From Lytechinus pictus (Eukaryota): 64,000 bases of DNA. Each line of letters starts with the position of its first letter. Positions within the stretch are counted from its first letter, which is position 1. The stretch spans positions 310,001-374,000 of the forward strand of contig NW_026974154.1 in assembly GCF_037042905.1 (NCBI RefSeq), written 5' to 3'. Made by a program: the position numbers and the translations under genes. Below are positions 10,423 to 48,159 of the stretch, in pieces. The notes beneath the pieces are model-generated. The model had not been told where the DNA came from, did no database searches, and saw only the letters and a program-made list of their open reading frames with translations.

Positions 10423-10826
10423 TTAAGAATTAAAGATTTGTGAATTGTTAAAGTTTAGTTCTCTTATGCAAGCAGTTTTCCATTTATATTTGTGTAGCAA
10501 ACGTGCAACTTACAGGCAGAGGTTAAGCTGTGTATTTGTGCAAATAATTCATCATCCATTCACCATGCAATTATAGTTGTCGTCATTCTTAAAAGCAACG
10601 CTATAGAAATACATATTGAGAACATTGTTTAGAGCTATGCATTTTCTACCCAATTTCTATTTGATTATTGATTGCACTTGAATATCTTTGTTTATTGTGA
10701 TTATTTTATGAGGAAGAGAAAGAGAGAGAGAGAGAGCGAGAGAAAGAGAGAGTAGAGGAACCTTGATGTACTGGTTCTGATTCTTGCCCTTTAAGCAGAG
10801 GATCGTGTGTTTGAATCCCACCACGG

Positions 10827-12427
10827 TGTAGCGGCATGAATATAATTTGGTATATTTGCCATTATTATGTACTGTTTACATGTATGTATCTTGTATACAG
10901 AGTTAGTGGAAAAAGAAAGTAAAAAATGTCAATGCAAGATTGTACACAGCGCATTGCTTATTGTGCTCCTTGATTCCAAGAAGTCCAGGAGAAGATGAGT
11001 CATGTGGGTGAAGCATCACCCAAACTATAGAACAAAGAAAGTAAGATTCAGAAGTTGCAAAGATTCAGAAGAAGAGAGTCAAGAAATTATATTTATTCCT
11101 GTAAATTGTGAAATTCCCCAGGATTGCAAACAGTTGGTAAGTTTAAATTGCATTATTATCAAAGTTTATATATGTGCTGTCAATTATACCATAATACTGG
11201 GTTTAATAAGTCATTCACATTTATGTAATTTTGGCTCAAATTTGAGTGATGGAATTTGGCATTTTGCTCTCTATCGAGCATTACTTCATAATGTATACTT
11301 GTACACACAGACCGATAGAAAGTGATTGGTGTTCAGTCAGATTTAATTATTATTAATATGTTATAAAGATCAGTATGCTTCGTATTATTGTGTGCTATTA
11401 TGTTCACATGAACTTATTCTTTGATTATACAAGAAGATTATATTGCATTTATTTTTCTGAGAGTGATATATAATGCGCACTTCATTTAGTTGTAAGTAGT
11501 CAACTGGTGTTATATATTGTGTAGGGTGGTAGGGTCTCCTAGCTTAGGCATGAGATCATTGGGTTATTACTCTATTACTATATTATGTTATCATAAACAT
11601 ATCTAAGTACTGTTTGGTTTAGTTTAGGAATCACATATATTATGATTCATCATGGTTTATTAGTATTTAACCAGTTATTAGTAAGTGTTTGTTATATATT
11701 TTCTGTTTGCCTATATTAATTTCAGTATTATTTGCTTTAAGATAATAAGGGTATTAAAGGGATGAAGATGTTTATTAACTATAATTACAATTATTAGGCC
11801 AACAAGATAATGAGTTTATATTGCACATATTCAGATTTAATCTGATATTGATTACAGTTATTGATTACCAATTTATTATTGTTTACCAAACAATTATTCA
11901 ACTCAAATAATATGATCAATTATTGAGGTTTCCTTTAATCACGTTAATATCCTTGACCGTTGTATATTGCATCAGTATCATTGAGACTTATTCCCTGTGG
12001 GTATATAAGAAGTTATTTACAAGTTATTCAGTCATGTTTGAATTATGTTACTGTTGGTAAATGAATATTAACACTGTGTTTATATGTTTATTTGTTTATT
12101 CAGCGAACCGCTCAATTACCGCTCAATTACCGCTCAATTACCGCTCAATCGCTCAAACGCTTATGCAATTGTTGACGTACTGGTTGTTGACAGTTGATGC
12201 TGGTTAAAGGTTTCTTCGCTGGTCGTTGGTTATGTCGACCTAGAAACTTCATTACAAGGCCGTATTTGATGTCAAGTTGTTGATTTATGTGTCGTCATTA
12301 TTACGGAAGAAGTTGAAGAAGGAATAAACAGACAAGTAACTGTAAAGCCGCTGTTTGAGTCTTCAATTAGCGTGTTCGAACTAAGCAATTAAGAATTTCC
12401 ACGTGTAGTTTAAGAAAGGCAGCTACA
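10827..12427 (+). repeat. 5' LTR (1601 bp)
   Basis: Direct repeat of 18240-19829; TG...CA ends; AATAAA at 12323-12328; four ACCGCTCAAT(T) units. Confidence 0.97.
11137..12103 (+). other. Predicted 967-nt GT-AG intron inside the LTR (3' LTR copy at 18550-19516)
   Basis: Consensus donor TTG|GTAAGT, AT-rich body, branch-like TATTAAC (12066-12072), pyrimidine-rich tract ending TTATTCAG|. The joined junction is exactly complementary to the PBS position. Confidence 0.75.
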
Positions 12428-12447
12428 CGACAGTTCGCAACTGTTTT
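12428..12447 (+). promoter_or_regulatory. Non-canonical primer-binding-site region CGACAGTTCGCAACTGTTTT
   Basis: The only 20 nt between the LTR end and the gag ATG. No TGG. 12433-12446 is the reverse complement of the predicted LTR splice junction. Confidence 0.7.
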
Positions 12448-15400
12448 ATGGATCCCTCAAATAAACCAAATTCAGAAGCCCTTGCTGGAGTTGGACCTGG
12501 AGCTGGAGACGAGGATGATGTAAAGTCTACCACATCTCGGGGGAGCGCCATGTCCAGAGTGTCTTGTGTAAGCGATACATCAAGCGTGAAACTAAGAGCA
12601 GCGAGGGTGAAGGAGGAGCTGGTGAATAAGAAAAGGGAGCAGTTCTTACAGGAACAAAGACTAAGACGAGAACAGTTTAAATTACAACAGGAACAATTTG
12701 AACTGAATGAAAGAATAGAACTTCTCAAGATCGACCATGACAAGGAAAATGCCAAGGTTGAAGCCACCATGTGGCAAGAACAAGTAAATGAAGAAAGGGC
12801 AGAAGCAGGATTTCCGCCCTTACCTAAGAAGGACTTGGACAATGTACAAATTACAGAAAGTTGGTTCTCCACCCAGGGAGAATCAAATCATCAGGGTAAT
12901 GTACCAAATGTTCAAAAGGATAATGTATATGTTAAAGGTAATGAACATGTAAGTACTGGTGTAGTAGGTGAAGGTACTACAACAATTCATAAGCCGAGTA
13001 ATGAAGGAGTAGGGTTAAGCAGGGGATACAATGGTAATCACCAAGTTAATAGCCAAGCGCAAGAACAGAAACCCTTCATACCCAATCCATTTCAGACCCC
13101 AGTTAATAACATGTATAATCATAATATGATGGCAATGGCTCTAAGTTTGCCAAAGCCAGACATGCCAACTTTCTCAGGCAATCCGATTGATTATTGGAAT
13201 TTCGTGAATAGTTTTGAAGTTAATATTGCTGACAGAATTCATGACAGTAGGTTAAAATTGTCTTACTTAATTCAGTTTACCTCAGACAAGGCCAGAGAGG
13301 CCATAGAAAATTGTGTATTATTAGATCCCGATACAGGTTATTCCCGAGCTAGGATAATACTACAGGACCAGTTCGGACGGAACTACATAGTGGCTAGAGC
13401 TCACCTGGAGAAGGTCATCAATAGATCACCACTTAGGGCCACGGACAGCCAAGGTCTGTGGGATCTAGCCAGAGACATGAGGAGGTGTCAGATGACAACT
13501 TCTCAGATGGGGTACTCGGCTGATATGAGTACAACGGATACCCTACTGAAGATTCAACATCTTCTCCCAGTCCACATTCAATCCAAGTGGGCCAGCCGAG
13601 CACATTCACTGATGGAGCAATCAGTGATGCCCAACTTCTCCCATCTGACAGACTTCATCGAAGAGTCTGCTAAGGTGGCGAGTAATGTGTTCGGTAAGAG
13701 CGTAGGGCGTCCAGCCGTGCAAGACAAGAAGGCATCTGCGGGAAAGCCTAGGCCAAAGGTTTCGACCTTTAATACTACAACAAGCAAGTTTGAGAAACCT
13801 AAGGAATCGAGCTCATGCCCATGCTGCTCAGAGAAGCATGAGCTTGATAAGTGCCGCAAATTTAAAGGTCAGTCAGTAGATGAAAGGTTTGCCTTTGTCA
13901 AGTCTAAGGGGCTATGTTTCAATTGCCTCAAATGGTCGCACATGGCAAAGGGCTGTACAGCTAACCCTAAGTGCAGCAAGGATGGGTGCAAGAAAAGACA
14001 CCACACCCTTCTTCACATGGAGTGGTCCACCAAGGGCAAAGATAAAGGGCAAGAAACAGGTAAGCAAACTGGGGCCGGGCAAGGATCTGACTTAGATAAA
14101 CAGGCCGACACTAATGCTGTTGGTGGTCAGAAAGAGGTTTGTCTCCGAGTTTTACCTGTCAAGGTTAGAGGCAATCGCAGGGAGGTGACAACATGGGCTT
14201 TGCTGGACCATGGCAGCGATGTTTCCCTCTGCGAACAGCGTCTTGCAGATGACCTCGGCATCCAAGGTAAGGAGACAAACTTCCGACTGACCACGGTGAA
14301 CAACACTAATACCCAAAGGGGAGGACAGGAGGTTAGTTTCTCCATTCAAGGAATTAAGGACAGGGATGTAATTGATATGCCCAGGGTGTGGACGGTAGAA
14401 TCACTACCAACAACCCATAGAAGTATACCAAGGCAACAGGACGTAGATAGATGGTCCCATCTGAAGGGAATAGAGCTTCCAACAGCTCCCAAGAAGGATA
14501 TCACCTTGCTCATAGTGAGTGACACCCCAGAGGCCTTCTGGGTCCAGGAAGAAAGGAGGGGAAAGAAGAAAGAACCTTATGCTATCCGTTCTCCACTGGG
14601 ATGGACAGTCATGGGCCCCACTGGACGCAGAAGGAAAGGAGCATTTGAGGTGAACAACATCTCCTCAATGGATGACCATTTGCAAGAGCAAGTCCAGAGA
14701 TTCTGGAAACTGGACTATGCTCCTGGTGATGAGAGTGAAAGATTAGGTGACTCGGTAGAAGACAGGAAGGCTCGTGCCATGATGGAAGACACAATCCGTC
14801 TTATGGATGGCCATTATGAGATGGGTTTACCTTGGCGTCAATTCCCTCCGTCTCTACCAAACAACCACAAGATGGCAGAGTCACGTTTACGATCTCTAAA
14901 GAGAAGACTGGAGAAGGATGACAGCCTTCACCAGAAGTACACAGAAACTATGACAAATTATTTGTCGAAGGGGTTTGCAAGGGAGGTGGACGAGGACCCT
15001 CAAGAGGAGGGCTCTATCTGGTATCTACCTCACCACCCAGTGACTCATCCCTTCAAGCCGGAAAAGGTGCGTGTAGTATTTGACTGTGCTGCCAAATACC
15101 AAGGAATCTCCCTTAACAGCCAGTTATTGAGTGGACCGGATTACACAAATAAGCTTGTTGGTGTGCTTCTTCGCTTCAGACAAGAGGAGATAGCACTGGT
15201 GGCAGATGTGGAGGGTATGTTCCACCAAGTGAGGGTCACACCCGCCCACACTGATGCGCTCAGATTCTTGTGGTGGGAGAACGGCAACACGGACACGACG
15301 CCTAAGACGTACAAGATGCAAGTCCATCTGTTTGGAGCGACTTCGTCTCCAAGCTGTGCAGGCTTTGCACTCCAAAGGACTGAGGAAGACAACAGGCAGG

Positions 15401-18006
15401 ACTTTGAGCCAGAAGTTTGTCAGATAGTCAAGGACAATTTCTATGTCGATGACTGCCTGAAGTCTGTTCGCTCTACAGAGGAAGCGATAAGGCTCATTCC
15501 TCAGTTATGCAGCCTACTAAGAAAAGGAGGATTCAGACTAACAAAGTGGGTCAGCAATGACAAGGAAGTGTTGGAAACAGTCCCTCTTACAGAAAGGGCT
15601 GCATCGGTAGTTGATCTAGATTTGGATCATCTTCCAATAGAGAGAACACTTGGAGTCTTATGGAACATGGACTCTGACATGTTTAGCTTCAAGGTTTCTC
15701 CCAAGGACGTACCAGCAACAAGAAGGGGTATACTGTCCGCCACAAGCTCCTTGTATGATCCACTTGGATTTGTGGCACCTTTCACAGTAAATGCAAAGCT
15801 TCTTTTGCAGGATCTTTGCGCCCAAGGTCTTGGCTGGGACGAGAAGATCAAGGACCAGGACTTGCAACGCTGGCGAGCCTGGCTGGCTGAGTTACCAGAG
15901 TTAACCTCAGTACACATCCCCAGATGTTTCAAGCCATCTGACTTCAAGGACCCTGTCTATGATCTCCATGTGTTCTGTGATGCGTCAGAAAGAGCATATG
16001 CAGCATGTGCCTATCTACGGATAGAGGATTCTGGTCGCACCCACAGTGCACTTGTGATGGGGAAGACAAGACTTTGTCCTCTGAAGAAGATGACAATTCC
16101 CAGATTGGAGCTGTCAGCAGCAGTACTAGCGGTAAAGCTGGGTCGAACCATCATGGAAGAACTCAGGCTACCAGTGAGGAGCGTCACATACTGGACTGAC
16201 TCTACCTCAGTGCTGCTGTACATAAGGAATACCAGTAGGAGATTCCGTACATTTGTGGCAAACAGAGTAGCTGTCATTCAAGAAAAGAGTGACACTTCAC
16301 AGTGGCGCTACGTTGATACCAAGAGCAATCCAGCAGATGATGGCTCAAGAGGATTGCATGCAGGACAGCTATCAAGATGGATCCAAGGACCAAACTTCCT
16401 TCTGAAGCAAGAAGAAGACTGGCCGGAAGCATTCCTAACTCCGACTGACCAGAGAGTATTGCCCGCTCAGGACCTCAAGGATGATCCTGAGATGAAGAGG
16501 ACTAATGCCATATCAATCAAGCCTCAAGACAGCATTAGTAATCTGATCAGTCGCTATTCATCCTGGAATAGATTAAAGAGAGGAGTAGCTTGGATCCTTC
16601 GCTTCAAGGCACACTTGATAGCCCGCACAAAGAAAGGTACATCTCAGAAGACTACAGATTTGACACCCTCCGAGTTGTCGGAAGCTGAGCTGGAAATAGT
16701 GAAGTACATTCAGAAGGATGCCTTTCCAGCTGAGTTTGAGAAGAACAAGAAGTCAAGGGTTGAACAGTCCTCCATGAAGAAATTGAACCCTACCCTAGTT
16801 GATGATGTCCTTAGGGTAGGAGGGAGATTGGACAGATCACCTATTGACTTTGATGCCAAACACCCCATGATATTGCCAAGCAACCATCATGTGACCAGAC
16901 TGCTCATTGAGCACCACCATCATGAAGTTGGTCACTCTGGTGCAGGCATGACATGGACGGCACTAAGGTCGAAATATTGGATCCTGAAGGGGGGTTCCAC
17001 TGTTCGACGGATCATAGGGAAATGCATTCAATGTAGGAAGAGGAATGCACCAAGAGGAAGGCAAATGATGGCTGACTTGCCGAAAGAAAGAGTGACACCT
17101 GGCAGGCCGCCATTTACCTTCACCGGAGTCGACTACTTCGGGCCATTCAGTGTTAAGCAAGGACGGAGCCAGCCAAAGAGGTATGGCTGTATATTCACTT
17201 GTTTGACAACTAGGGCTGTACATCTGGAGATAGCCAACTCCTTGGATACAGATTCATTCATTAACGCTCTTAGAAGATTTGTAAATCGCAGGGGGCTACC
17301 TGAGAAAATCTTTAGCGACAATGGCACAAACTTCAGAGCAGGACATAAAGAACTAAAGCAGAGCCTAGCAGAGCTCAACTCAACAAAGGTGGGTCGCTTT
17401 CTAACTCAGCGAGGGATTGAATGGGCGTTTAATCCTCCGGGTGCAAGCCACATGGGTGGTGTTTGGGAAAGAGTAATCCGGTCAGTTAGGAAGATATTGG
17501 GAAATCTTCTCAAGCTTCAGACTGTAACCGACGAAACTCTAAGCACACTCATGTCTGAAGTAGAAGCAATCCTAAATGCTAGACCATTGACACCCTTAAG
17601 CGCGGATCCTAAAGACGAGGAACCGCTAACTCCAAACCATCTTCTTCTCATGAGAAGAAATCAGTCACTTTCACCAGGGGTATTTGATAAGAGTGACTGC
17701 TATACTCGAAGAAGATGGAGACAAACCCAATATCTGGCCGGACAGTTCTGGAGGCGTTGGACAAAGGAATACCTTCCCTTGCTCCAAGAACGCCAAAGGT
17801 GGCTTAAACCACAAAGAAACTTCCAGACTGATGACCTTGTACTCATAGCTGATGACACTGCTCCTCGTGGGCACTGGCCACTAGGTAGAGTGACTATGAC
17901 CTACCCAGACAGACACGGACTAGTTAGACAAGTTGAAGTTAGGGTAGGATCTAAATACTATAAACGACCAATTTCTAAATTATGTCTTTTAGAGAGCAAC
18001 GATTAG
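12448..18006 (+). CDS. BEL/Pao gag-pol polyprotein (1852 aa), no env
   Basis: Gag with three Cys/His knuckles (CPCCSEKHELDKC, CFNCLKWSHMAKGC, CSKDGCKKRHHTLLH); protease ALLDHGS; RT KVRVVFDCAA, ADVEGMFHQV, FYVDD; RNase H FCDAS, RLELSAA, WTDST, NPAD; integrase HH-CC, GVDYFGP, SDNGTNF, GGVWE. Confidence 0.97.
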   Translation: MDPSNKPNSEALAGVGPGAGDEDDVKSTTSRGSAMSRVSCVSDTSSVKLRAARVKEELVNKKREQFLQEQRLRREQFKLQQEQFELNERIELLKIDHDKENAKVEATMWQEQVNEERAEAGFPPLPKKDLDNVQITESWFSTQGESNHQGNVPNVQKDNVYVKGNEHVSTGVVGEGTTTIHKPSNEGVGLSRGYNGNHQVNSQAQEQKPFIPNPFQTPVNNMYNHNMMAMALSLPKPDMPTFSGNPIDYWNFVNSFEVNIADRIHDSRLKLSYLIQFTSDKAREAIENCVLLDPDTGYSRARIILQDQFGRNYIVARAHLEKVINRSPLRATDSQGLWDLARDMRRCQMTTSQMGYSADMSTTDTLLKIQHLLPVHIQSKWASRAHSLMEQSVMPNFSHLTDFIEESAKVASNVFGKSVGRPAVQDKKASAGKPRPKVSTFNTTTSKFEKPKESSSCPCCSEKHELDKCRKFKGQSVDERFAFVKSKGLCFNCLKWSHMAKGCTANPKCSKDGCKKRHHTLLHMEWSTKGKDKGQETGKQTGAGQGSDLDKQADTNAVGGQKEVCLRVLPVKVRGNRREVTTWALLDHGSDVSLCEQRLADDLGIQGKETNFRLTTVNNTNTQRGGQEVSFSIQGIKDRDVIDMPRVWTVESLPTTHRSIPRQQDVDRWSHLKGIELPTAPKKDITLLIVSDTPEAFWVQEERRGKKKEPYAIRSPLGWTVMGPTGRRRKGAFEVNNISSMDDHLQEQVQRFWKLDYAPGDESERLGDSVEDRKARAMMEDTIRLMDGHYEMGLPWRQFPPSLPNNHKMAESRLRSLKRRLEKDDSLHQKYTETMTNYLSKGFAREVDEDPQEEGSIWYLPHHPVTHPFKPEKVRVVFDCAAKYQGISLNSQLLSGPDYTNKLVGVLLRFRQEEIALVADVEGMFHQVRVTPAHTDALRFLWWENGNTDTTPKTYKMQVHLFGATSSPSCAGFALQRTEEDNRQDFEPEVCQIVKDNFYVDDCLKSVRSTEEAIRLIPQLCSLLRKGGFRLTKWVSNDKEVLETVPLTERAASVVDLDLDHLPIERTLGVLWNMDSDMFSFKVSPKDVPATRRGILSATSSLYDPLGFVAPFTVNAKLLLQDLCAQGLGWDEKIKDQDLQRWRAWLAELPELTSVHIPRCFKPSDFKDPVYDLHVFCDASERAYAACAYLRIEDSGRTHSALVMGKTRLCPLKKMTIPRLELSAAVLAVKLGRTIMEELRLPVRSVTYWTDSTSVLLYIRNTSRRFRTFVANRVAVIQEKSDTSQWRYVDTKSNPADDGSRGLHAGQLSRWIQGPNFLLKQEEDWPEAFLTPTDQRVLPAQDLKDDPEMKRTNAISIKPQDSISNLISRYSSWNRLKRGVAWILRFKAHLIARTKKGTSQKTTDLTPSELSEAELEIVKYIQKDAFPAEFEKNKKSRVEQSSMKKLNPTLVDDVLRVGGRLDRSPIDFDAKHPMILPSNHHVTRLLIEHHHHEVGHSGAGMTWTALRSKYWILKGGSTVRRIIGKCIQCRKRNAPRGRQMMADLPKERVTPGRPPFTFTGVDYFGPFSVKQGRSQPKRYGCIFTCLTTRAVHLEIANSLDTDSFINALRRFVNRRGLPEKIFSDNGTNFRAGHKELKQSLAELNSTKVGRFLTQRGIEWAFNPPGASHMGGVWERVIRSVRKILGNLLKLQTVTDETLSTLMSEVEAILNARPLTPLSADPKDEEPLTPNHLLLMRRNQSLSPGVFDKSDCYTRRRWRQTQYLAGQFWRRWTKEYLPLLQERQRWLKPQRNFQTDDLVLIADDTAPRGHWPLGRVTMTYPDRHGLVRQVEVRVGSKYYKRPISKLCLLESND

Positions 18007-18228
18007 GCTACTTTGACATATGACCGACATAAGACTTGTAGGGACCACACCCTCTTTATTATTGTTACATTAATGATTGTTGTAAGATTGATTTGATGTA
18101 TTCTTAATCTCATTGTTATTTTCATTACTATGTTTATGTTTATATCGTTAAGTATGGTATATTGGTTAATGATGCCGCTTTACATGTTTACGGTTTAATG
18201 AAATGAGTAACTGGTGGTTGCCTCATTT

Positions 18229-18239
18229 GGGGCCGGGTA
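18229..18239 (+). promoter_or_regulatory. Polypurine tract GGGGCCGGGTA
   Basis: G-rich tract abutting the 3' LTR start. Confidence 0.75.
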
Positions 18240-19829
18240 TGTAGCGGCATGAATATAATTTGGTATATTTGCCATTATTATGTACTGTTTACATGTATGT
18301 ATCTTGTATACAGAGTTAGTGGAAAAAGAAAGTAAAAAATGTCAATGCAAGATTGTACACAGCGCATTGCTTATTGTGCTCCTTGATTCCAAGAAGTCCA
18401 GGAGAAGATGAGTCATGTGGGTGAAGCATCACCCAAACTATAGAACAAAGAAAGTAAGATTCAGAAGTTGCAAAGATTCAGAAGAAGAGAGTCAAGAAAT
18501 TATATTTATTCCTGTAAATTGTGAAATTCCCCAGGATTGCAAACAGTTGGTAAGTTTAAATTGCATTATTATCAAAGTTTATATATGTGCTGTCAATTAT
18601 ACCATAATACTGGGTTTAATAAGTCATTCACATTTATGTAATTTTGGCTCAAATTTGAGTGATGGAATTTGGCATTTTGCTCTCTATCGAGCATTACTTC
18701 ATAATGTATACTTGTACACACAGACCGATAGAAAGTGATTGGTGTTCAGTCAGATTTAATTATTATTAATATGTTATAAAGATCAGTATGCTTCGTATTA
18801 TTGTGTGCTATTATGTTCACATGAACTTATTCTTTGATTATACAAGAAGATTATATTGCATTTATTTTTCTGAGAGTGATATATAATGCGCACTTCATTT
18901 AGTTGTAAGTAGTCAACTGGTGTTATATATTGTGTAGGGTGGTAGGGTCTCCTAGCTTAGGCATGAGATCATTGGGTTATTACTCTATTACTATATTATG
19001 TTATTATAAACATATCTAAGTACTGTTTGGTTTAGTTTAGGAATCACATATATTATGATTCATCATGGTTTATTAGTATTTAACCAGTTATTAGTAAGTG
19101 TTTGTTATATATTTTCTGTTTGCCTATATTAATTTCAGTATTATTTGCTTTAAGATAATAAGGGTATTAAAGGGATGAAGATGTTTATTAACTATAATTA
19201 CAATTATTAGGCCAACAAGATAATGAGTTTATATTGCACATATTCAGATTTAATCTGATATTGATTACAGTTATTGATTACCAATTTATTATTGTTTACC
19301 AAACAATTATTCAACTCAAATAATATGATCAATTATTGAGGTTTCCTTTAATCACGTTAATATCCTTGACCGTTGTATATTGCATCAGTATCATTGAGAC
19401 TTATTCCCTGTGGGTATATAAGAAGTTATTTACAAGTTATTCAGTCATGTTTGAATTATGTTACTGTTGGTAAATGAATATTAACACTGTGTTTATATGT
19501 TTATTTGTTTATTCAGCGAACCGCTCAATTACCGCTCAATTACCGCTCAATCGCTCAAACGCTTATGCAATTGTTGACGTACTGGTTGTTGACAGTTGAT
19601 GCTGGTTAAAGGTTTCTTCGCTGGTCGTTGGTTATGTCGACCTAGAAACTTCATTACAAGGCCGTATTTGATGTCAAGTTGTTGATTTATGTGTCGTCAT
19701 TATTACGGAAGAAGTTGAAGAAGGAATAAACAGACAAGTAACTGTAAAGCCGCTGTTTGAGTCTTCAATTAGCGTGTTCGAACTAAGCAATTAAGAATTT
19801 CCACGTGTAGTTTAAGAAAGGCAGCTACA
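18240..19829 (+). repeat. 3' LTR (1590 bp)
   Basis: Same as the 5' LTR except one fewer 11-bp ACCGCTCAATT unit and one C/T difference noticed (11592 vs 19005). Confidence 0.97.
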
Positions 19830-19860
19830 CACGGTCTGGCGTCCTTTGGCTAGGCGTTAA

Positions 19861-20621
19861 CCCTAAAAAGACTGGGGGGGGGGGGCTGATTCAGCCCCCC
19901 CCCCCCTCGACATTTTTTGTAAATAAATCCGCCGCGCAAATTTTTTTAACCGCGTCACTCACTGACTTTTTACTCTCAAGTCTCGCACAACTTTTGAGAC
20001 CAAAATTGTGACCCCCGGGTACGCGGTTCCGAAATTACACAACATTTCGTAAGTGCATGCAGACCCAAAATTACTCAAAAACGTGAATTTATGTACAAAT
20101 CCAGTGCAAATGGTGTTTTTAGCCAAAATTCATTAATGTATCATTATTTTTCCTTTTACTGCTTAAAATCAATTAATTTTATCTTTTTTATGGTCAAAAT
20201 AAAGGCCCTGACGATTTCCATTGAAAAAACAATAAAAAACAAAAAGTCGAAAAACAAATACATAAGAAATTTAGAAAACAATAGAATACATAAGAAAATA
20301 AATGTGATGTTTAAATTTTTGAAAAATAAATTTGATCAGATGCCTATATAGAGTATGTGAAACCAAAATTAGCATTTTAGAGGCATTATTTTATTAATTA
20401 GAGCAAACTTATGATTTTACGCATAAACTTAGCATAATTAATGAGCAATGAGATTTTTCGCAAAATTTGATATTATAGTTTTGTAGATAATGCCATGGGT
20501 AACGCGCGTGCCAATTTTCGTCGCGATCGCGCGATCGACGGCCGAGATCATAAGGGGGGGCTGAATCAGCCCCCCCCCCCCCAGTCTTCTTAGGTGTCGA
20601 AATAGCCCCGTCTATTTTGGG
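19861..20621. mobile_element. piggyBac-like non-autonomous element
   Basis: TTAA|CCCTAAAAAGAC ... GTCTATTTTGGG|TTAA, with subterminal GGGGGCTGA(T/A)TCAGCCCCC palindromes at both ends. Confidence 0.8.
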
Positions 20622-48026: not shown

Positions 48027-48159
48027 NNNNNNNNNNNNNNNNNNNNNNNNNNNNNNNNNNNNNNNNNNNNNNNNNNNNNNNNNNNNNNNNNNNNNNNNNN
48101 NNNNNNNNNNNNNNNNNNNNNNNNNNNNNNNNNNNNNNNNNNNNNNNNNNNNNNNNNNN
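48027..48159. other. Assembly gap (N run)
   Basis: 133 Ns. Confidence 1.

Follow-up and report, generated by a model that had tools for sequence, protein, structure and literature searches.

A candidate primer-binding site complementary to the spliced LTR leader of a BEL/Pao retrotransposon from Lytechinus pictus

Anatomy of the element and its leader

The window analysed here, i.e. the whole 64-kb stretch (64,000 nucleotides) of Lytechinus pictus DNA, contains a complete, young BEL/Pao LTR retrotransposon that extends from flanking duplication to flanking duplication over positions 10822-19834 (Table 1). Its two LTRs are distinguished by 1 mismatch and one 11-bp repeat unit, and the polyprotein encoded between them carries, in order, the Pfam domains Asp_protease_2, RVT_1, Peptidase_A17, Integrase_H2C2 and DUF5641, the match to Peptidase_A17 (Pao, PF05380) being full-length (residues 1091-1252, E = 1.2e-50). 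The closest protein match to this polyprotein is a Lytechinus pictus protein (98% identity), and the proteins most closely related to it are Pao-type ones from echinoderms and corals. Taken together, the Pao-type peptidase, the domain set, the TG..CA LTRs and the 5-bp duplication, whose length falls within the 4-6 bp expected of the group, identify the element, as judged from its sequence, as a member of BEL/Pao. The purine-rich tract that adjoins the 3' LTR is also present upstream of 3' LTRs in other copies.

Table 1. Features of the element, with positions given in the window
Feature	Position	Strand	Basis or remark
Target-site duplication CACGG	10822..10826 and 19830-19834	+	Identical 5 nt flank both element ends
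5' LTR, 1601 nt, TGTAGC...GCTACA	10827..12427	+	99.9% identical to 18240-19829
TATA-like box TGTAAAT, putative promoter element	11100..11106	+	37 nt upstream of donor
Exon 1 end, 5' part of predicted primer, AAACAGTTG	11128..11136	+	Pairs with 12438-12446
Spliceosomal-type intron in LTR, 967 nt, donor GTAAGT, pyrimidine tract and CAG acceptor	11137..12103	+	Sequence; intronless copies
Exon 2 start, 3' part of predicted primer, CGAAC	12104..12108	+	Complementarity to primer site
Short tandem repeat, CGCTCAATTAC units, start of remaining leader	12109..12157	+	Unit number unequal between the two LTRs
AATAAA, candidate poly(A) signal in exon 2	12323..12328	+	105 nt upstream of LTR end
Spacer CGACA, LTR end to primer site; predicted unprocessed tip of linear cDNA	12428..12432	+	Same 5 nt retained at three LTRs
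Candidate primer-binding site, exact spliced-junction complement, 14 nt	12433..12446	+	Complementarity, decoy test, covariation
Gag-Pol ORF, 1852 aa, BEL/Pao type	12448..18006	+	Pfam domains; single ORF
Purine-rich tract GGGGCCGGGTA, candidate plus-strand primer	18229..18239	+	Read from sequence; adjoins 3' LTR
3' LTR, TGTAGC...GCTACA, with same intron	18240..19829	+	LTR pair comparison

The intron predicted within each LTR is bounded by a GTAAGT donor and a TTTGTTTATTCAG acceptor, which conform to the GT..AG consensus and have equivalents in all relatives examined. Upstream of it, the TATA-like box reads TATAAAT in most other copies and lies 37-39 nt before the donor across elements, and a motif, TGTAAATT.T.GAAATTC, is common to this element and a sea-cucumber element at the same distance from the donor. 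The end of exon 1 (11128..11136) is kept in 20/20 LTR copies of the family, its last 2 nt being missing in two. Downstream of the intron, exon 2 contains the candidate poly(A) signal, which is found 82-120 nt upstream of the LTR end in 8/10 elements; the intron should therefore lie inside R and be present at both ends of the RNA. Repeats similar to those of the short tandem array at the start of the remaining leader sit at the same place in other families.

Immediately downstream of the 5' LTR, the 20 nt that separate it from the ATG (12428-12447, CGACAGTTCGCAACTGTTTT) contain no TGG, as the first-pass annotation of this DNA had stated on the basis of an LTR end at 12427 and an ATG at 12448, both of which we confirm from the sequence. 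The same annotation had proposed that joining the donor (CAGTTG/GTAAGT, 11136/11137; a slash within sequence letters marks the splice site) to the acceptor (TTTGTTTATTCAG/CGAAC, 12103/12104) creates a complement to these nucleotides. Recomputation gave the same result: the joined exons, AAACAGTTGCGAAC, are an exact 14/14 reverse complement of 12433-12446, to which exon 1 contributes 9 nt and exon 2 contributes 5 nt, with a mismatch on either side and with the site beginning 5 nt past the LTR end. The length of 14 nt holds for this copy, but not for the other five full-length copies, which read ...CAACTGCAT... instead of ...CAACTGTTT..., so that their complement is 11 nt. Copy-to-copy variation within families occurs only at this far end of the site (14 vs 11 nt here, and 14 vs 11 in the C2 family of this genome); one might speculate that such length variants would fit re-copying of the site from primers of unequal length.

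As a control, all pairs of the 11 strong donors and 25 acceptors of the LTR were compared with 2000 windows from the element interior, whereby 0/2000 of these decoys reached 14 nt and 0.35% reached 10 nt. Fold prediction of the spliced leader has all 14 nt paired with the site, at a probability of ~1.0 if the RNA starts at 11128, and the predicted duplex energy is -20.1 kcal/mol, vs -8.8 when only the exon 1 half is paired and -3.8 when only the exon 2 half is. The primer site itself is predicted to form a small hairpin (ACAGTT-CGC-AACTGT, -5 kcal/mol). Additional TGCA/GTGCA pairing after a bulge, present in this element and in that of Oculina, was considered too irregular and was not counted.

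Conservation and covariation in relatives

Other BEL/Pao families of this genome (Gag 25-54% identical), together with relatives from public assemblies, were surveyed for the same arrangement, which was found in 15 BEL/Pao elements, i.e. in every element with a fully readable LTR. These comprise eight families of this genome, two of S. purpuratus, and elements of the sea cucumber Apostichopus japonicus, the starfish Patiria miniata, Diadema setosum and the corals Oculina patagonica and Dendronephthya gigantea (Table 2). One rule describes all of them (15/15): a strong donor and acceptor internal to the LTR give a junction complementary to 10-15 nt that begin 3-7 nt past the LTR, the complement being made up of 4-10 nt from the end of exon 1 and 5-7 nt from the start of exon 2, and the introns measuring 129 to 967 nt.

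Table 2. Spliced junctions complementary to the post-LTR site in related elements
Element	Junction (exon 1/exon 2)	Complement	Intron (nt)
C20, this genome	CCAAAAGTTG/TAAAC	15 nt	
C5, this genome	ACAGTTG/TTAAAC	13 nt	244
C2, this genome	CAATGTT/ATTGAAC	14 nt	
C11, this genome	AGTTG/TCAAAC	11 nt	
C17 (L077), this genome	CGTT/ATTGAAC	11 nt	
C17/C9 (L082, L083), this genome	TGAC/ATTGAAC	11 nt	
S. purpuratus family 1	AGTTG/TAAAC	10 nt	
S. purpuratus family 2	AGTTG/TGAAC	10 nt	
Apostichopus japonicus	AGTTG/TAAACCT	12 nt	
Patiria miniata, Diadema setosum	AATCG/TGAAC	10 nt	
Oculina patagonica, Dendronephthya gigantea	CAAA/TTCGAAC	11 nt	405 and 129

All elements put through the decoy test were positive (11/11), four further positives standing outside that test. 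Covariation between the junction and the post-LTR sequence of related TGG-less BEL families, which the first-pass annotation had named as a check on its reading, is present: when 11 elements are aligned from the 3' end of the primer, the first 10 positions form 110/110 Watson-Crick pairs, and compensatory changes are found at seven core positions (2-4 pair types each). Past position 10 the pairing in these 11 elements drops to about half; it ends at ..AAC in all aligned elements, the next base of the leader being C in 10/11. The complementarity between junction and site is neither a product of chance nor private to this copy. Covariation proves pairing, not priming.

The start of exon 2 (5-7 nt) could be predicted from the primer site alone, and this prediction was confirmed at seven further loci with a pyrimidine-tract CAG acceptor; in a control of acceptor prediction, families with a 5-nt exon-2 share gave 6/6 observed vs 0.011 expected by chance. 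Similarly, the donor of the C17 element, predicted from its sister at ~31235977, was found at 31235976. A compensating G had been expected in this donor, which proved to be unchanged, leaving one mismatch in the 15-nt pairing. Pattern searches returned no TCGAGTTG/GTRAGT donor near the L070 copy and no SCAATTG/GTRAGT donor near the L064 and L065-67 copies; these patterns required 7-8 paired exon-1 bases, whereas the universal core requires 3-5. The L076 family has the same leader without an intron, its complement being contiguous. A fish relative (P0002) was set aside because its gene model is chimeric and an LTR pair was not within reach. The distance from site to AUG is 17-111 nt in other families and 1 nt in this copy.

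A host RNA complementary to the site, another check that the first-pass annotation had named, was sought in the 812-Mb genome with the 16-mer complementary to 12428-12443 (<=1 mismatch), which matched only at six elements' own sites. Rfam yielded chance-level matches only, none to a relevant family, and ARAGORN detected no tRNA in the window. The 18-nt site for tRNA-Arg or tRNA-Gly is absent here, where a 20-nt gap without TGG takes its place, and in all 15 relatives examined. The site of each family is matched by the junction of its own LTR, not by one common host RNA.

Intron loss and the start of minus-strand DNA

Approximately 20 LTRs of the family are present in the genome, 15 with the intron and 5 without. 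The latter comprise both LTRs of the C6 element, which has the duplication CCCTC, both LTRs of the C7 element, which has the duplication GTAAT, and the C143 LTR, and in 2/3 of these cases the junction is exactly that predicted: the LTRs of C6 and that of C143 read GCAAACAGTTG/CGAACC, which agrees with the prediction to the base, and in C7 the intron is absent together with 7 further nt (TG+CGAAC). A tree of the exonic parts of the LTRs does not place the intronless copies in one group, so that intron loss must have recurred (at least two separate events). Since reverse transcription of spliced RNA yields integrated, duplication-flanked copies from which the intron is precisely absent, these copies with their target duplications indicate that the intron is precisely removed in vivo. 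The possibility that the intron is a recent insertion was considered and ruled out, because its ends carry no duplication and the same split position is found in two phyla.

RNA reads mapped to the element gave a depth of 0-5, with no junction in three or more reads. Sense reads of run X19, at very thin depth, lie over 10969-11136 and 12103-12354 and leave the intron uncovered, and the bin 11095-11157 has a depth of 1.33, the value that two reads stopping at 11136 would give; this pattern fits splicing at 11136, and is only suggestive. The junction is also present in run X1, but this run has the appearance of DNA, and intronless copies exist in the genome.

At three LTRs that lack an adjoining internal region downstream, exactly the 5-nt spacer is retained (...GCTACA+CGACA), and one of these LTRs (C3) is a true 3' LTR with a purine tract before it. 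The target duplication is absent at both spacer-retaining LTRs with a readable left flank, whilst a 5-bp duplication is present at all copies ending in ACA. In linear retroelement cDNA, the first base to be copied beside the primer determines the right end, and the simplest reading of the retained CGACA is that it represents unprocessed cDNA ends that were inserted without normal integrase trimming. If so, synthesis would start at 12432, with the last base of the primer paired with G12433, which is the first base of the junction complement; a primer whose last base lies opposite G12433 would in turn exclude a ...CCA tRNA end. The additional gap in the C7 element ends at 12108/12109, i.e. at the cut predicted below and hence at the run-off end expected of strong-stop DNA; no microhomology that might otherwise explain this gap was found, and we take it as a second, weaker hint at the position of the cut. 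Retroviral integrases remove 2 nt. The spacers of 3-7 nt exceed this, and their length was counted against the self-priming model.

Splicing-dependent self-priming, its alternatives and known systems

We consider it probable that the element primes its own reverse transcription in a Tf1-like manner that depends on splicing, with the leader RNA, and not a host tRNA, as the primer. The notion of a primer that exists only after splicing was put forward in the first-pass annotation, and is supported by conservation with covariation, by the intronless copies, by the retained spacer and by the lack of any other complement in the genome. According to this model, the intron in R would interrupt the primer sequence, and its removal would join the exon 1 and exon 2 parts into a stretch of 10-15 nt. 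The spliced leader would pair with the site that begins 3-7 nt past the 5' LTR and, by analogy with Tf1, would be cut after ..AAC (here between 12108 and 12109), whereupon DNA synthesis could proceed from its 3'-OH, beginning at 12432 and running across U5 and then across that portion of R which belongs to exon 2. Within R, the strong-stop DNA made in this way would share homology with exon 2 only and, once transferred to the RNA 3' end, would copy whatever lies upstream: an unspliced 3' copy would restore the intron to both new LTRs, and a spliced 3' copy would give rise to intronless progeny. The same RNA molecule would probably serve as primer and template (i.e. in cis), which we favour over the use of a second spliced RNA, and splicing may act as a licence for reverse transcription.

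The position of the TATA-like box, 37-39 nt before the donor, would place the RNA start within a few nt of the complement, which would then lie near the 5' end of the RNA. Two points about this start speak against the model: as set by the TATA-like box, it gives a first exon of <10 nt, which the spliceosome may or may not accept, and a more upstream start would leave the primer with a 5' tail, unlike Tf1. The arrangement has been kept in echinoderms and corals despite recurrent loss, which argues that intron-bearing lineages do better. For the broader proposition, that an old BEL/Pao clade common to echinoderms and cnidarians requires spliced genomic RNA for priming and rewrites its intron from the unspliced 3' R, we judge the case to be evenly balanced.

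Priming might instead take place in trans, an unspliced full-length template receiving its primer from another molecule, either a short spliced LTR RNA polyadenylated in the 5' LTR or a further genomic RNA that has been spliced; direct copying of the 5' R would then carry the intron over, no restoration being needed. We regard this as unlikely, even though the pairing, covariation and start-site data fit it equally well, being compatible with priming either in cis or in trans. It would dispense with a single RNA that is spliced at its 5' end yet unspliced at its 3' end, and the presence of AATAAA in the 5' LTR also makes short LTR transcripts plausible. The cut after ..AAC would still be required, however, and the unspliced leader, a 967-nt AT-rich insert with many upstream AUGs, would make a poor messenger.

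It is also conceivable, but in our view quite improbable, that the pairing is real and serves another role, e.g. as a translation or packaging switch, in RNA dimerisation, or as an exon-end splint that acts on the 5' intron copy only, with the true primer being different. Such a role would suit the end of the site 1 nt before the AUG in this copy, and the ability of the site to form a small hairpin by itself; because the site lies downstream of the 5' LTR only, a splint could moreover explain unequal splicing of the two intron copies. Nevertheless, in other families the site is 17-111 nt from the AUG; its location 3-7 nt past the LTR is the required position of a primer site, and no other candidate is present there; DNA synthesis, as judged from the retained CGACA ends, begins precisely at the border of the duplex; and the genome contains no host complement. 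Disfavoured to the point of being scarcely credible is the suggestion, made in the first-pass annotation, that free exon 1 from the first splicing step primes with its own 3'-OH: whilst two families of this genome draw 9-10 nt of the pairing from this exon, most elements draw just 4-5 nt from it, covariation with the site extends to the exon-2 half, and synthesis would start at 12437 rather than at the 12432 given by the retained ends. A chance match, or a host tRNA or tRNA fragment as primer, is in our view extremely unlikely, for although short complements are common in AT-rich LTRs and the ICTV profile gives tRNA-Arg or tRNA-Gly priming for Belpaoviridae (PMC8742986), the decoy rate is 0.35% per element against 11/11 positives plus four outside the test, the site contains no TGG and matches the element's own LTR in each family, and the genome contains no further copy of the complement.

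The evidence thus points to a large, active BEL/Pao clade in echinoderms and corals that primes itself, in contrast to the published description of tRNA priming (PMC8742986). Self-primed reverse transcription is already known; what would be new is a primer assembled by the spliceosome from two pieces of the LTR, along with the placing of an intron in R. With two copies of R in the RNA, the intron is able to survive, and the model offers a concrete, testable answer to the question of how an LTR element holds an intron, and may connect RNA processing with the decision whether to translate or to replicate. It also suggests a reason for recurrent intron loss without replacement of the intron-bearing form (5/20 LTRs are intronless, and the arrangement is kept in two phyla). 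Annotation tools that seek primer sites of the tRNA type will miss or misjudge these elements, and the rule described here (a junction complement, a 3-7 nt spacer and an ..AAC end) could be added to such tools. If the model is true, a retroelement with priming licensed by splicing would be described here for the first time, and with it a general route for an intron through the retroelement life cycle.

Members of the Belpaoviridae (Tas, Cer, Pao, BEL) are described as tRNA-primed from an 18-nt site that pairs with the 3' end of tRNA-Arg or tRNA-Gly, their replication being termed 'poorly understood' (PMC8742986). The main surveys of BEL/Pao do not discuss primer sites (PMC3118150, PMC554778), and the full-text literature searched, with subscription journals outside its scope, held no description of self-priming or of a junction-type primer site in BEL/Pao, in keeping with the first-pass annotation, which knew of none. 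The present element resembles canonical Belpaoviridae in having a Pao-type protease, RT, integrase and DUF5641 in one polyprotein, TG..CA LTRs and a 5-bp duplication, and differs from them in the absence of their 18-nt tRNA site. Deltaretroviruses and foamy viruses have a splice donor in R and are tRNA-primed; they too have a splice site within the LTR, but their introns run into the body of the element and their spliced RNAs are not genomes, whereas here the whole intron lies in R and splicing would make the primer. Copia and Ty5 are primed by an internal fragment of initiator tRNA-Met, and are similar to the present element in that the site has no TGG and that the 3' end of the primer is, or here would be, made by cleavage; their primer is a host tRNA common to all families, in contrast to the own LTR of each family here.

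The closest parallel is provided by Tf1 and Tf2 of Schizosaccharomyces pombe, elements of the Tf1/sushi group of Ty3/gypsy for which self-primed reverse transcription is known from Levin's work. As in these elements, there is no tRNA primer site, and a 10-11 nt core of the element's own leader pairs just past the 5' LTR; a cut in the paired leader would supply the 3'-OH, and the part upstream of the cut would be regained from the 3' R. The complement in Tf1 is formed by the first 11 nt of the transcript, and the TATA-like box would here place the start near the complement. An own-leader complement of the Tf1 type is present in 15/15 elements, in the spliced leader only, and is contiguous in L076 and in the intronless copies. 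Unlike Tf1 and Tf2, the element described here is BEL/Pao and not Ty3/gypsy, its primer is split by an intron and would exist only in spliced RNA, and its self-priming is proposed from sequence comparison. Its polyprotein being of BEL/Pao type, the element appears to work like Tf1 without membership of the Tf1/sushi lineage of Ty3/gypsy.

Intronless and spacer-retaining copies

An element on contig C7 of the host genome, which lacks the LTR intron, reads GCAAACAGT/CGCTCAAT in both of its LTRs. Seven nucleotides (TG+CGAAC) have been lost in addition to the intron. The gap terminates at the predicted cleavage site, and the match between this element's leader and its primer site has been lost.

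Three LTRs of the window element's family keep the 5-nt spacer CGACA past ...GCTACA, and no target duplication is present in the two for which the left flank was read. These appear to be cDNA termini that were inserted unprocessed, bypassing the usual trimming by integrase. The left edge of the C2 copy also bears TA, as on the purine-tract side.

Leader repeats, primer site and donor

Several unrelated families carry a short tandem repeat in exon 2 just past the primer, and the number of repeat units is unequal between the two LTRs of the window element. Because this repeat would form the 3' end of strong-stop DNA under the proposed model, such repeats might aid first strand transfer. In L070, another BEL/Pao copy of the host genome, the primer-site motif occurs as two tandem copies (GTCAGTTAGCAACTCG... 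and GTCAGTTAACAACTCG...); a pattern search near the element did not find the donor predicted from the first.

Insertion site and related repeats

The window element is inserted within a tRNA-derived SINE-like repeat, at which ARAGORN called no tRNA. Over 10780-10842 there is a pile-up of RNA reads whose overhanging ends run on into the SINE rather than the LTR; other SINE copies are therefore transcribed. In L088, the relative from the coral Oculina patagonica, a 429-nt block immediately past the 3' LTR recurs on the upstream side of the 5' LTR, at a distance of approximately 930 nt, and this element may lie within a larger repeat or tandem array.

Short Gag-like ORFs (412-542 aa) lie between pairs of CCAATTG/GTAAGT donors on host contigs C1, C3, C13 and C4, of which the 3.27-kb pairs (C1, C3, C13) probably represent a small BEL-derived, non-autonomous family whose LTRs carry the same donor.

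Coordinates of the features discussed (G000, host genome)
Feature	Location	Details
Intronless element	G000:C7:7886181-7893172	L006, L012, L030, L033
LTR with retained CGACA	G000:C3:13369797-13370136	L009
LTR with retained CGACA	G000:C2:5125375-5125708	L008
LTR with retained CGACA	G000:C8:32138262-32138565	L017
Short tandem repeat	window 12109-12157; L060 1124-1175; L084 LTR about 1130-1220; L091 4801-4900	first exon-2 bases after primer
L070	G000:C4:2669427-2672939	primer-site motif in last 60 nt ahead of ATG
(GA)n microsatellite	window 10712-10755	directly upstream of SINE
tRNA-derived SINE-like repeat	window 10757-10826, 19830-19865	...GGATCGTGTGTTTGAATCCCACCACGG / CACGGTCTGGCGTCCTTTGGCTAGG...
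133-N run	window 48027-48159	gap or masked stretch
429-nt repeated block	L088 2515-2943, 12096-12523	
Donor pairs	G000:C1:40736561/40739830, C3:40209433/40212704, C13:27856914/27860190	3.27 kb apart
Donor pair	G000:C4:1545745/1554876	9.1 kb apart
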